Counted from the first letter of the stretch, positions 2,090-21,910 are shown. The stretch: 64,000 bases of DNA from Macrostomum lignano (GCA_002269645.1 NIVC01001532.1:62001-126000), one strand, 5' to 3'. The notes: a model not told the origin generated them from the sequence alone. Made by a program: numbers and translations.

Positions 2090-5000
2090 CTACACTCTGA
2101 TAAAATGCGGCACCATATCCAGTTTGGCCGGGTGGTCCTTCAGCAGCAGCGGTCCATCAACCAGTCGGCCGCTGTAGCCGTCCTTCCATCGCCCCGACGG
2201 CAGCAAGATGTCCCTAGCAACTGAGCTTTGTCGAATTACCGGAGCCACTAGCAGCGAGTCGCCAACAAGGAACTGATCGTCCACTGTCCAAAGTCTGACG
2301 TCATCAACTGTACCGTCCGAAGCCCACCACAGCGGTCTGGTGACAGGCTCTCCCGTGCTGAACAACTGGGTCAAAGCCGCTTCCAACGCGGGGATGTACA
2401 CTTCCGCTCTGAGCTTCAGCGTCTTCAGAGCAATGTCCGTCACTTCTTGGTCATAGTCCCAGGGTGCGATTGAAAACTGCACGATTGGTAGAAAACTGCT
2501 GAGCTGCATCCAGCGGATGTACAGCTCACGTTCCGGCCTGGCGCCTTCCATGGAGTCCTCGGAGTACGCGTTTCCTGGAAATTGGATGCAATTTTGTTGA
2601 CTCTGGAGCCCCAGACAGACAGACACACACACACACACAGACAGACAGACAGAGAGACAGACAGACAGACAGACAGACAGACACACAGACAGACACACAC
2701 AGACAGACAGACAGACAGACAGACAGACAGACAGACAGACAGACAGACAGACAGACAGACAGACAGACAGACAGACAGACAGACAGACAGACAGACAGAC
2801 AGACAGACAGACAGACAGACAGACAGACAGACAGACAGACAGACAGACAGACAGACAGACAGACAGACAGACAGACAGATAGACCGACAAACAGACAGAC
2901 AGACAGACAGACAGACAGACAGACAGACAGACAGACAGACAGACAGACAGACAGACAGACAGACAGACAGACAGACAGACAGACTCACCGCCAATCATGT
3001 CGGGCATCACAAAGTGGTACCCCGCCATGGACAGCATCAGCGCATTGGGCACAATGGATCGCAGTCCGTTCCTCCCGCCCCAGTGGCTGTCCTTGTCAAA
3101 CATCCGGGTAGCAACCGGCACTGACTGAGTTCGATAGCCGGCTCGAACTTCGACAGCTCCGCCGAACTTTGCCGCCACCTGCTGAACGTAGGCCGTCGTG
3201 AACTGCATCGGCGCCTCCAGCGGGGCCTGAGTTCGAGCCCCCCTCAGATAGTACACCTCGCCAGCGTCGAATTTAAACGATTCGATGCCAAATTGCTGAC
3301 GAAATGTGACCAGCCGGTTCGCGAACCAGCTGACGGCGCTGGGGTTGGTCGGGTCCAGCTGACCTCCGACTCCCTGCCACCAGAGAATATCAGCTGACTT
3401 GTTGTTGTTGTCGTTAACTCTTTCAATCAAAAGATACCCAGCAGCCGCAGCTTCATCATAGGCCGAAGTATTCTTATTAAAAAATGGCACAATCCAAGTC
3501 GTGACCCGGTGCCCGATGTACTTTAGTTTGGCCGTCATCTCGGCAGGATTAGGAAACTTAATCGGATCCCATGCCAAATCGCCGTAGTTAATCGTGTACC
3601 GATCGTCAATTTCAATCTGACTGGCGGGAAAGCCAAGCCTAGTGACGTCATTAGCCAGAGATTCTACATCAGATTGAGCCACCGCCGTCTTGTGCCTGGC
3701 CCACGTGCACCAGATTGGTTCGCGAAGCATGCGACGGTCGGGAGACGATGTTGGACGAGTGTACAGCCTGTTGTGAGGAAAGATTGTTTGATTGCTTCGC
3801 ATTGCATGTGTCGCATGAAAGGTTAGTGGAATACATTGGGGTCATTGGAGGACATTCAAGGTTAGTCGACATTTAAAATTAGTGAATAACATTAAACTTT
3901 AGCGAGGAAGTTAAATATTAGTGGAGAACATTGAAGACCAGTGGAGGACATAGAAGATCTTTGGACGATATTGAAGGTTAGTGGAGAGCATTGAAGGTCA
4001 TTTAAGGACATTGAAGGTTAGTAGAGAGCATTGAAGGGCATTTGAGGACATTGAAGGTTAGTGGAGGACACTGAAGATTACTGTAGGACACTGAAGATTA
4101 GTGTAGGACACTGAAGGTTAGTGGAGGACACTGAAGGTTAGTGGAGGACACTGAAGGTTAGTGGAGGACACTGAAGGTTATTGGAGGACACTGAAGGTTA
4201 GTGGAGTACACTGAAGGCTTGTGGAGGACACTGAAGGCTAGTGGAGGACACTGAAGATTACTGTAGAACACTGAAGATTAGTGTAGGACAATGAAGGTTA
4301 GTGGAGGACACTGAAGGTTAGTGGAGGACACTGAAGGTTAGTGGAGGACACTGAAGGTTAGTGGAGGACACTGAAGGTTATTGGAGGACACTGAAGGCTA
4401 GTGGAGGACACTGAAGGCTTGTGGAGGACACTGAAGGCTAGTGGAGGACACTGAAGGCTAGTGGAGGACACTGAAGGCTTGTGGAGGACACTGAAGGCTA
4501 GTGGAGGACACTGAAGGCTAGTGGAGGACACGGAATGAAAGCCTATAAGTTTTTGCAGACAGGCAAGCAGTCATGCCTGATCCCTGATCCCAGAGCGGAC
4601 AGACACCGGCACAGGGGGTGTACAGTCGCCCTGACTTACAAGTGGGCATTAGGTAAGAGTTAGTATCGCCCATAGATACGTGTAAAAGCCAGAGGACTCT
4701 CACCAGCTGTGCGCAGCCAAGTAAGCCTCCTTGGCGCTGTCAGCCGCACAGATTGTGACATTCAAATAATCCCTAGGATTCGATCGCCAAAGATAAGCCT
4801 CGTCATCGGGTGTGGCAGTCAAGCATAGCCTACGATCGGCTTCTTGACCAACCGACAGCGGTGTGGCATCGTCCACATGCACCAGCAGGCCCCGAGACGT
4901 TAGCCAGAGTCGTTCAACGAATCCGCCCCAGAGATCAGATCGTTTAGCACCGGTGAGTTCCGCGAAATCGTTGCTGACGTAGGCTTGACTTGGCATCGAC

Positions 5001-6360
5001 TGGCTGTTGATCGGCCAGCGCTGGTCGAACGCGGCCCCGCCGCCGTAGACTGAGGCTGCCGGCAGCTCGAGGCAGAGACTGGCAGACTCTTTTGCTGCCG
5101 TTGTCAGGACGGCGCGGTGGCAGCTCAAGAATCGAGAATTAATAAACGACTGGGGTAGCGTGGTGACAGTAAGACTGCTGCCTCCGTTGCTCCAGGTGAT
5201 TGACAGGTCACGTGCATCTGTAGGACGAGAACTGCTGGGTTGCTGGTCGGACTGGAATGTGACATTAATTTTGTTTATTTGCAAAGAATTTAAATGGTAT
5301 TTTCTAAGAATCAGTGCTAGACACTTAAAAAACCAGAGTGAAACAATTTACAAAGCAGAGTGACACATTCTGAGTCAGAGTAACACATTCTAAGAATCAG
5401 AGCTCCACGTTCTAATAAATACAGCTCCACATTCCAATACAGCTCCATATTCCAATACAGCTGCACATTCTAAGAAATACAGCTGCACATTCTAAAAAAT
5501 AGAGCTCCACATTCCAAGAAATACAGCTCAACATTCTAAGAAATAGAGCTCCAAATTCCAAGAAATACAGCTCCACATTTTAACAAATACAGCCCCACAT
5601 TCTAAGAAATACAGCTCCACATTCTAACAAATACAGCCCCACATTCTAAGAAATACAGCTCCACATTCTAACAAATACAGCTCCACATTCTAAGAAATAC
5701 AGCTCTACATTCTGAGAAATACAGCTCCACATTATAAGAAATATGCTTTCACATTCTGGGAAGCAGATCGAGCTTCATATTCTAAGAAATAAAACTTCAA
5801 ATGCTAATATAGAGCGTCCCATTCCAAGAAATAGTTTTACACTTACATGCAGTTCATGTAAATTGATTCCAAGAAACTGAGATAATGTGCGCTTGAAAAT
5901 TAGCTACGAATAATACTACATGTACATGCATAAGTATACTAAGAATGAGCCGACACTTTCCAAGAATCGTAGCAAAATTTCTTAGAATTCCAAGAAAATC
6001 AAGTAATATAACAAAACAAACCTTAGATTGAACGGACAATTTCTCTCCACTCCATGCCAGACTAAATTCGCCAATAAGCTCAGATTTTTTCTTTATTTTT
6101 CCACTGCTCGAAGATTCAGTCCGATAGACTTTAAGTCGATCATTTTCGAATGCTACAGCGCTGGTAACTAATGATACTTGGTCTTCTTTTAAGCTTCCTG
6201 ATTCATCAGGTGCGATACTGTCAGTACTTGCAGGAAAGTAGGCCGACAACAAACTGTAGACAATGAAACTAATTATCAACACAAGAATTGCTCGTCCAAT
6301 GAAACCTGATGATGAGCTTTGATTGACAGGTACCTGTCGGGTAGTAGCAGATCCTGTCAT
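2090..6360 (-). CDS. MYORG: MYORG-like GH31 glycosidase, type II membrane protein; exons 6360-6022, 5251-4704, 3767-2989, 2574-2090 (716 aa)
   Basis: N-terminal signal anchor ([19 protein letters not shown]). GH31 motifs [16 protein letters not shown], nucleophile KFDAGE, RMFDKDS, PDMIGG|[26 protein letters not shown]. All junctions are GT-AG and phase-compatible (0,2,1); the spliced CDS is 2151 nt. Confidence 0.88.
2613..2984. repeat. (CAGA)n microsatellite in MYORG intron 3
   Basis: Near-perfect tetranucleotide run. Confidence 0.98.
3885..4530. repeat. 20-bp minisatellite (GTGGAGGACACTGAAGGTTA) in MYORG intron 2
   Basis: ~30 copies, degenerate at the left end. Confidence 0.95.
5395..5790. 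repeat. 22-bp minisatellite (AAGAAATACAGCTCCACATTCT) in MYORG intron 1
   Basis: Tandem copies visible. Confidence 0.9.
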
Positions 6361-6449
6361 GGTTTGCTTTTTTGTTTTGATTCATGAATTTTTTTCTATG
6401 AAGCTTTACAAACTTGTGACACAAAGTCTGAAGCACCGCAATGTATAAA

Positions 6450-21553: not shown

Positions 21554-21703
21554 GGGCTGCAAACGGTTAGTTGGCCTGCAATGCGAGCGAGTCCGGCAAG
21601 ATTAATATCAAAATAAGGTATAATGATTTATGCATTAAATGAGCAAGGTAAACAGGCTGCAGTGTACACTGCTATCAGCTCTGTGGGTTTCTGGTCCACT
21701 TAC

Positions 21704-21910
21704 CCAGTCTGACCCAGGGTAGACGACAGAACTACTGTCATAGCTTCAAATCGGCTTAGATAGGTAAAGATTTGACTCAAAGTTAGGCGAAGAGAAAAAG
21801 TAGAACATTACGTAGCAATACTTGGGGCCTTTTTATATGCAACAGTGAGGGGTCAGAGTCCAACGGGTCAATCTCTTTCTAGATCGCTATCTTGCCAGCC
21901 AATGACGAGT
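21704..21910 (-). promoter_or_regulatory. Candidate TATA promoter and 5' UTR exon of the Bcl-2 gene
   Basis: TATAAAA on the minus strand at ~21837-21831, CCAAT at ~21900, strong donor TGG|GTAAGT at 21703, and acceptor TTTGCAG 3 nt before the ATG. Confidence 0.5.

Follow-up and report, generated by a model that had tools for sequence, protein, structure and literature searches.

A head-to-tail cluster of six genes led by a Bcl-2-like gene and MPV17 in the flatworm Macrostomum lignano, and its possible polycistronic transcription

The minus strand of a 64,000-nucleotide stretch of the Macrostomum lignano genome (the window; 100% identical to bases 62001-126000 of contig NIVC01001532.1, assembly GCA_002269645.1, Mlig_3_7) carries six consecutive genes: a Bcl-2-like gene, MPV17, two small open reading frames (ORF76 and ORF93), the mitochondrial ribosomal protein gene mL51 and a MYORG-like glycosidase gene of family GH31. 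All six models were rebuilt from the sequence, and the run of six described in the initial annotation is present where it had been placed (Table 1). Both flanking genes lie on the opposite strand: the cystinosin gene (15-1202, plus strand) is convergent to the cluster, and a kinesin gene (from 33650, plus strand) is divergent from it, beyond ~12 kb of AT-rich, ORF-poor DNA. The members of the cluster are adjacent and share one orientation, as is required of operon genes in this species (PMC8629364), and no opposite-strand GenBank coding sequence (CDS) lies inside it. We lean towards the view that transcription of this head-to-tail cluster yields a single polycistronic precursor or a few of them, to be resolved by spliced leader (SL) trans-splicing.

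Four of the six products belong to known families. The Bcl-2-like protein matches Pfam PF00452 (E 6e-21), has Bcl-w, Bcl-xL and Bcl-2 as its best PDB matches (E 2e-18 to 1e-15), the nearest being the anti-apoptotic Bcl-w/Bcl-xL, and ends in a hydrophobic anchor (a 19-mer at residues 206-224), which places it in the Bcl-2 family. The MPV17 product matches Pfam PF04117 (E 2e-18), has at least three hydrophobic segments and carries the UniRef name 'Mitochondrial inner membrane protein Mpv17', its subfamily among MPV17, MPV17L2 and peroxisomal PXMP2 being assigned by name only. The start codon context of MPV17 (CAAGATGGCACT, 17900-17889) resembles the vertebrate TISU element (SAASATGGCGGC), maybe by chance; TISU elements are typical of mitochondrial genes with a short 5' untranslated region (UTR). 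The mL51 product, to which an annotated protein in GenBank assembly GCA_002269645.1 is identical, is a mitoribosomal protein by its match to Pfam PF10244 (MRP-L51, E 1e-18) and to the mL51 chains of solved mitoribosomes (E 3e-9), and its nearest database relatives are named mL51. For the last gene, which had been put forward as 'possibly MYORG', the match to human MYORG (PDB 7QQF, E 4e-117 over residues 154-713) bears out the identity; together with its GH31 Pfam domains and an N-terminal type II signal-anchor (hydrophobic segment at residues 24-42), this makes it, judged from its sequence, a clear MYORG orthologue. On the window's contig it is annotated as a partial protein (GenBank PAA66779.1, BOX15_Mlig006082g2). 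For ORF76 and ORF93, searches of 5.8 billion or 1.8 billion proteins yielded no homologue, nor did either match Pfam; no localisation can therefore be inferred for them.

Table 1. Features of the window, in order of transcription of the cluster (positions counted from the first nucleotide of the window; a slash marks a splice boundary; gaps run from stop codon to ATG)
Feature	Position	Strand	Details
Promoter-like elements ahead of Bcl-2	21828..21905	-	inverted CCAAT and TATAAAAA
Putative first exon of Bcl-2, non-coding or alternative	21704..21808	-	donor CTGG/GTAAGT, exon end 21704
Two acceptors before the Bcl-2 ATG	21556..21583	-	CATTGCAG/ (exon start 21575), GTTTGCAG/ (exon start 21556)
Bcl-2-family gene	20293..21553	-	CDS 21553-21017 and 20448-20293; 230 aa
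Bcl-2 to MPV17 gap	17895..20292	-	2398 bp raw, 353 bp tandem repeat, 2045 adjusted; 37% GC
MPV17 candidate acceptor	G at 17956	-	TTTTTCCCAG/
MPV17	14707..17894	-	4 coding exons (17894-17700, 15722-15507, 15026-14974, 14878-14707); 211 aa
MPV17 to ORF76 gap	12005..14706	-	2702 bp raw, 1480 bp tandem repeats, 1222 adjusted
ORF76 candidate acceptor	G at 12041	-	TTTCAG/
ORF76	11774..12004	-	76 aa, one N-terminal hydrophobic segment
ORF76 to ORF93 gap	11207..11773	-	567 bp raw, 334 bp minisatellite, 233 adjusted
ORF93 candidate acceptor	G at 11245	-	TTACAG/
ORF93	10925..11206	-	93 aa, one moderately hydrophobic segment, basic N-terminus
ORF93 to mL51 gap	8401..10924	-	2524 bp raw, 2122 bp tandem repeat, 402 adjusted
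mL51 candidate acceptors	G at 8406 and 8403	-	TTCAG/CAG/
mL51, mitochondrial ribosomal protein	7795..8400	-	single exon, 201 aa from ATG
mL51 to MYORG gap	6361..7794	-	1434 bp raw, 679 bp tandem repeats, 755 adjusted
MYORG candidate acceptor	G at 6428	-	CTTCAG/
MYORG-like GH31 glycosidase	2090..6360	-	exons 6360-6022, 5251-4704, 3767-2989, 2574-2090; 716 aa
Kinesin motor gene	33650-40571	+	multi-exon, Pfam PF00225
Single-exon membrane protein	43244-45199	-	651 aa, without Pfam match
Single-exon ORF	56505-57740	+	411 aa, without Pfam match

Two further contigs, NIVC01001531.1 and NIVC01003217.1, are near-identical duplicates of the window region, as is expected of the neopolyploid M. lignano line (PMC8629364). 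The order of the six genes is kept in all three copies, and the lengths of the minisatellites differ between them.

Intergenic distances in the operons of this species are inflated by repeats; once these are subtracted, the distances peak at ~100 bp, and 1 kb serves as the cut-off (PMC8629364). We therefore measured each gap both raw and minus the tandem repeats found by Tandem Repeats Finder (TRF); the adjusted values are upper bounds, since UTRs were not subtracted. The last three junctions (233, 402 and 755 bp) fall below 1 kb even before UTR subtraction, and the run from ORF76 through ORF93 and mL51 to MYORG is operon-like by its repeat-adjusted spacing. The repeat between ORF93 and mL51 is mainly a 1.9-kb array of a 37-bp minisatellite, and among the three copies this gap varies from 899 to 2516 bp, a difference due to minisatellite length alone. 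The window showed no further dispersed repeats. As to poly(A) signals, the first AATAAA after Bcl-2 stands at 18863 and would leave ~0.9 kb to MPV17; others stand in the gap between MPV17 and ORF76 (14201, 14024 and 13767) and in that between mL51 and MYORG (6999). Between ORF76 and ORF93 the only poly(A) signal is an ATTAAA (11268-11263) ~20 nt before the acceptor AG at 11245, so that cleavage and trans-splicing there would nearly coincide.

The single SL of M. lignano is 35 nt long and terminates in AUG (PMC8629364); its 3' end reads CGGTCTCTTACTGCGAAGACTCAATTTATTGCATG. An AG acceptor ahead of each downstream gene, as had been claimed, was found at all five, 2-67 nt upstream of the ATGs. Three of these (12041, 11245 and 6428) fit [T/C]TNCAG, also written YTNCAG, the published motif of trans-splice sites, which is itself present at only 44% of real M. 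lignano sites (PMC8629364). For 7.5% of background ATGs, the 70 nt upstream hold the motif and no other ATG stands in between, a value that rises to 13.5% per 70 nt if ATGs are ignored; the enrichment is therefore modest (P ~0.02-0.05).

The region ahead of Bcl-2 carries an inverted CCAAT (TCATTGGCTGG, 21905-21895) and a TATA element (TATAAAAA, 21837-21830), both almost identical in the two other genomic copies, followed by a putative first exon, the start of which (~21808) was placed from the position of the TATA element. An independent ML2-derived gene model (P0042, 250 aa, MTVVLSSTLGQTGPTNRLQPMAGQ...) uses this 5' exon. The ATG at 21741 within the exon stays in frame via the first acceptor and lengthens the N-terminus by 20 aa (MTVVLSSTLGQTGPTNRLQP-), a form that UniRef A0A1I8HIL1 also has. 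The annotated Bcl-2 mRNA on NIVC01001531.1 (P0040, 'PMAGQ...') begins with CCC right after TTGCAG, at the equivalent of window position 21556, which fits an SL site there; were the SL joined at 21556, its AUG would be in frame too (M-P-M-A-G-Q). Cis- and trans-splicing often take place at one acceptor in flatworms (PMC12582326), and the acceptor at 21556 may likewise serve both. The initial annotation had noticed a TATA/CCAAT promoter with a 5' exon only here. The CCAAT and TATA elements and the 5' exon are real, and the full set is found only ahead of Bcl-2, but TATA-like octamers also occur in two of the gaps: between Bcl-2 and MPV17 (20070, 20061, 19734, 19688, 19686, 18440 and 18438) and upstream of ORF76 (TATAAAAG at 13918). 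Note that on NIVC01003217.1 the duplicate of Bcl-2 exon 1 (L006 3015-3560, corresponding to window 21553-21017) has two 1-bp deletions, at CDS positions 233 and 324, and therefore only a 92-aa fragment is annotated there (Mlig019886g5); they would be explained by decay of this duplicate or by an error in the long-read assembly.

Direct evidence for a shared transcript comes from the published RNA-seq-based annotation. There, multi-gene precursors make up ~7% of the assembled transcripts; TBONE cut them at SL and poly(A) signals, and the authors read them as genuine (PMC5730564). Genes cut from one transcriptional unit (TU) family share a MligNNNNNN prefix; TU Mlig030697.1, for example, gives Mlig030697.g1 and.g2. 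By exact look-up, Bcl-2 is Mlig019886g3 on the window's contig (GenBank PAA66782.1, BOX15_Mlig019886g3, partial) and g5 on NIVC01003217.1, and MPV17 is Mlig019886g7 on NIVC01003217.1 (its protein is identical to GenBank PAA52564.1, BOX15_Mlig019886g7); the prefix is shared by these two genes and not by mL51 or MYORG. Since the two proteins are unrelated in sequence, the shared prefix means that at least one assembled TU spans Bcl-2 and MPV17. Bridging between adjacent genes, the lack of which the initial annotation had named among the results that would refute its model, is thus present for this pair as an assembled unit, and with Bcl-2 and MPV17 documented in one unit the cluster is probably at least partly polycistronic. 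We also considered the 'gN' suffix as an indicator of position within a TU and rejected it: g1, g2 and g3 are the suffixes of the MYORG copies on three different contigs, and only the prefix is therefore informative. Exact-sequence look-ups for transcript contigs with mL51, ORF93 and ORF76 matched only NCBI genome contigs, and among the rows of the paper supplements searched for MRPL51, MPV17, KIAA1161, BCL2 and the Mlig locus tags none was relevant.

SL trans-splicing and operons, which the initial annotation had taken as established for flatworms, are documented for M. lignano itself: ~30% of its genes are trans-spliced and ~15% have been placed in operons, which comprise two to nine genes and in 93% of cases two or three, and ~60% of SL-trans-spliced genes lie outside operons (PMC8629364). 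In this setting, the cluster would be transcribed into one or a few polycistronic precursors, and 3' cleavage, polyadenylation and addition of the 35-nt SL at the AG acceptors 2-67 nt upstream of the start codons would resolve these. The acceptors named in Table 1 would be the ones that the SL uses, and the last four genes may belong to the unit of the first two. Most likely, the cluster is an example of the ordinary operon mode of the M. lignano genome.

Several observations weigh against such a common transcript. The gaps of 2045 and 1222 bp exceed 1 kb as upper bounds, and both contain the TATA-like motifs listed above. The published motif is absent from the acceptors of MPV17 (TCCCAG) and mL51 (GTTCAG), two upstream ATGs separate 17956 from the MPV17 start codon, and at the ORF93, mL51 and MYORG junctions the terminal AUG of the SL would create an out-of-frame upstream AUG in each case. 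Programs such as StringTie and TACO can fuse neighbouring genes via read-through transcription. The TU names, too, differ: mL51 is Mlig028470g1, the MYORG copies are Mlig006082g1-3 and the Bcl-2 copy on NIVC01001531.1 is Mlig020655, so that in the published annotation the cluster is divided among three or more TU families. As for one polycistronic unit comprising all six genes, the part that stands is the Mlig019886 prefix shared by Bcl-2 and MPV17; the other prefixes of mL51 and MYORG and the two gaps above 1 kb do not agree with it.

Where the annotation begins mL51 and MYORG bears on neither side. We tried GenBank 5'-partial CDS starts as markers of SL sites and rejected them for these two genes. 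The sister mL51 copies on NIVC01003217.1 and NIVC01001531.1 are annotated as 204 aa, 5'-partial ('SAAM...'; on NIVC01001531.1 as PAA66790.1, Mlig028470g1, partial), and neither this start nor that of MYORG ('IKTKKQTM...') is preceded by AG. The former follows ATTGC-TG (8409-8417) and the latter ATT-CATG (6382-6389), with equivalents on the other copies; each is at edit distance 1 from the SL 3' end ATTGCATG, a similarity reached by 0.075% of window positions. These starts are probably pseudo trans-splice sites that arose from tolerant SL trimming in the annotation pipeline; looking like trimming artefacts, they give the proposed precursors no support and do not refute them either. A relict SL from retroposition was rejected because the similarity ends after the last 7-8 nt, and a fixed annotation offset of 4-5 nt was rejected because it misfits the MYORG start and the exact P0040 boundary.

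The simplest competing explanation is that six independently transcribed genes happen to share a strand, with the Bcl-2/MPV17 TU being a read-through or overlapping-UTR assembly artefact and the AG acceptors ordinary 5'-UTR features or monocistronic SL sites. We regard this as possible and distinctly less probable than polycistronic transcription. A same-strand run of six genes has a chance of ~3%, which is not negligible genome-wide, the long AT-rich gaps before MPV17 and ORF76 hold TATA-like motifs, mL51 and MYORG have separate TU prefixes, and most SL-trans-spliced genes of this species (the ~60% given above) are not in operons; for the M. lignano genes tested by the authors of the genome paper, no more than 2 kb upstream from the start of transcription sufficed for tissue-specific expression (PMC5730564). 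However, the shared TU prefix would then need reads that bridge ~2 kb of non-repetitive intergenic DNA, in an annotation whose authors treat multi-gene TUs as genuine precursors (PMC5730564). Moreover, there is hardly space for promoters in the adjusted gaps of 233-755 bp, and the poly(A) signal before ORF93 lies next to its acceptor. A second doubt, which we hold to about the same degree, concerns ORF76 and ORF93, either or both of which might not be separate coding genes: they could be chance ORFs in intercistronic or UTR RNA, or parts of one cis-spliced two-ORF mRNA, in which a weak donor at the ORF76 stop codon (TAG/GTTAGT, 11773) would be joined to the acceptor at 11245. Between this donor-like site and the acceptor lie 529 bp filled with repeats. 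The lack of homologues and of a Pfam family fits non-coding status, ORF76 is unannotated in GenBank on every copy, and the codon-usage scores of the two ORFs (0.12-0.13) lie at the low end of real genes, with 3 of 12 null ORFs scoring as high. Divergence between the paralogous copies was tried as a test for selection and dropped for having too few differences: with 1 difference over 513 nt in the small ORFs versus 11 over 1356 nt in the adjacent gaps it is too low, and selection on the small ORFs therefore cannot be shown. On the other hand, their frame-specific codon bias is like that of confirmed genes and opposite to that of a spurious repeat ORF; ORF93 is called as a CDS on all three contigs that encode it (NIVC01001532.1, NIVC01001531.1 and NIVC01003217.1); each of the two is preceded by a clean YTNCAG acceptor without an upstream ATG; and both are intact in all copies, the sole difference being synonymous. 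Taken together, these signs of coding are weak, and a coding status of ORF76 and ORF93 appears plausible.

The most ambitious explanation is that of the initial annotation, namely one six-gene operon driven by the Bcl-2 promoter only, which couples apoptosis control to mitochondrial biogenesis and in which ORF76 and ORF93 encode mitochondrial microproteins. Six same-strand genes between opposite-strand neighbours, a complete set of promoter elements with a 5' exon only ahead of Bcl-2 and the TU prefix shared by Bcl-2 and MPV17 all agree with it. So does the family of MPV17 and mL51, as do the one hydrophobic segment in each small ORF and the basic N-terminus of ORF93, and M. lignano operons can reach nine genes, with RNA-seq TUs often breaking in repeat-rich intercistronic regions (PMC8629364). 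The different TU prefixes of mL51 and MYORG and the two adjusted gaps above 1 kb with their TATA-like motifs nevertheless make this explanation unlikely, and, without a homologue or Pfam match, ORF76 and ORF93 cannot be assigned to any compartment. Its mitochondrial theme fares no better. MPV17 and mL51 are mitochondrial by family, Bcl-2 is arguable, through its association with the outer membrane, and MYORG is not mitochondrial, its family being known as glycosidases of the endoplasmic reticulum and nuclear envelope; a theme common to all members does not hold, as about half of the six genes fit it, and three of six is a post-hoc count. Mitochondrial and other housekeeping genes are over-represented in nematode operons, and a partial mitochondrial flavour is thus what ordinary operon biology predicts. 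In our reading, this flavour follows incidentally from operons collecting housekeeping genes and is no dedicated regulatory coupling; a grouping that is functional rather than a general habit of the genome is not supported, and a single six-gene operon with functional meaning strikes us as quite unlikely.

Polycistronic transcription of the cluster, which we continue to favour, can be set beside known operon systems. With the M. lignano operons described so far (Wudarski et al. 2017; Ustyantsev & Berezikov 2021) the locus shares the species, the single SL, same-strand neighbours, repeat-inflated gaps and, at three of the five junctions, YTNCAG acceptors; it differs in that two of its five junctions exceed 1 kb (as CDS-to-CDS upper bounds), in falling into at least three TU families and in having six genes, which is at the rare upper end of operon size. 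The conserved trematode operon of cytochrome b-c1 complex subunit 7 together with enolase (PMC12582326) likewise joins a respiratory-chain gene to a housekeeping gene in a flatworm, but it involves other genes, parasitic species and a 300-bp threshold, and no Bcl-2/MPV17 pair is reported there. The specialised SL2 of nematode operons contrasts with the one SL of M. lignano, the lineages and their SL systems being unrelated, and the nematode gap of ~100 nt contrasts with ~2 kb between Bcl-2 and MPV17; with a single SL and gaps of 233-2045 bp after repeat subtraction, the cluster is not an operon of the C. elegans SL2 type. Operons without an intercistronic region, such as the SL1-type operons of C. 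elegans and those of Ciona and Oikopleura, are resembled by the ORF76-ORF93 junction only, the other junctions measuring hundreds of bp after repeat subtraction. A modest parallel in gene content is the C. elegans ced-9/cyt-1 (mev-1) locus, which Hengartner and Horvitz reportedly described as polycistronic in 1994. There, as here, an anti-apoptotic Bcl-2 homologue would be co-transcribed with the gene of a mitochondrial inner-membrane protein, although the partner is said to be the complex II cytochrome b560 in the nematode and is MPV17 in the flatworm. This likeness is best read as convergence or coincidence. That all six genes form an SL operon run from the Bcl-2 promoter, with ORF76 and ORF93 as mitochondrial membrane microproteins specific to the lineage and with an independent link of the anti-apoptotic Bcl-2 gene to genes of mitochondrial maintenance, convergent with ced-9/cyt-1, we consider very unlikely.

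The cluster is rich in repeats, with 37 TRF rows in 24 kb, and nearly each of its introns and intergenic regions has its own minisatellite. One 23-bp family (GATTCTTGGGGTGGATTAGGGGC and variants) recurs at 18986-19338, 16463-17611 and 10638-10843, that is, in the gap between Bcl-2 and MPV17, in MPV17 intron 1 and in the region after ORF93. Long (CAGA)n tracts stand in a MYORG intron (2612-2984) and an MPV17 intron (15074-15489), the introns of MPV17 being filled with minisatellite and (CAGA)n; read through on either strand, these tracts give 'SVCLSVCL' pseudo-ORFs. Over Bcl-2 and 10 kb upstream (window 20580-31553), NIVC01001531.1 and the window are 99.4% identical, and downstream of Bcl-2 (14319-19338) only ~90-93%, repeats included; the histories of duplication or gene conversion seem to differ between these two parts of the cluster. 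The GenBank annotation is inconsistent among the three copies: on the window's own contig the intact mL51 (7795-8400) and MPV17 (14707-17894) CDSs are unannotated, and a spurious 94-aa proline/serine ORF within a minisatellite (7382-7098) is annotated instead. No SL RNA gene, tRNA or Rfam family was found in the window.

A by-product of this analysis is that some 5' ends labelled 'partial' in the Mlig_3_7 annotation look like pseudo trans-splice sites. ORF76 and ORF93 can be counted as candidate unannotated microproteins. M. lignano is tractable for transgenesis, and the locus could be a test bed for the processing of very long, minisatellite-filled intercistronic regions. If Bcl-2 and MPV17 do form a true operon, this flatworm would represent a second animal lineage with co-transcription of a Bcl-2 homologue and the gene of a mitochondrial inner-membrane protein, and the locus would be a small citable case bearing on why operons gather mitochondrial and housekeeping genes; otherwise it is an ordinary example of a feature that covers ~15% of M. 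lignano genes.

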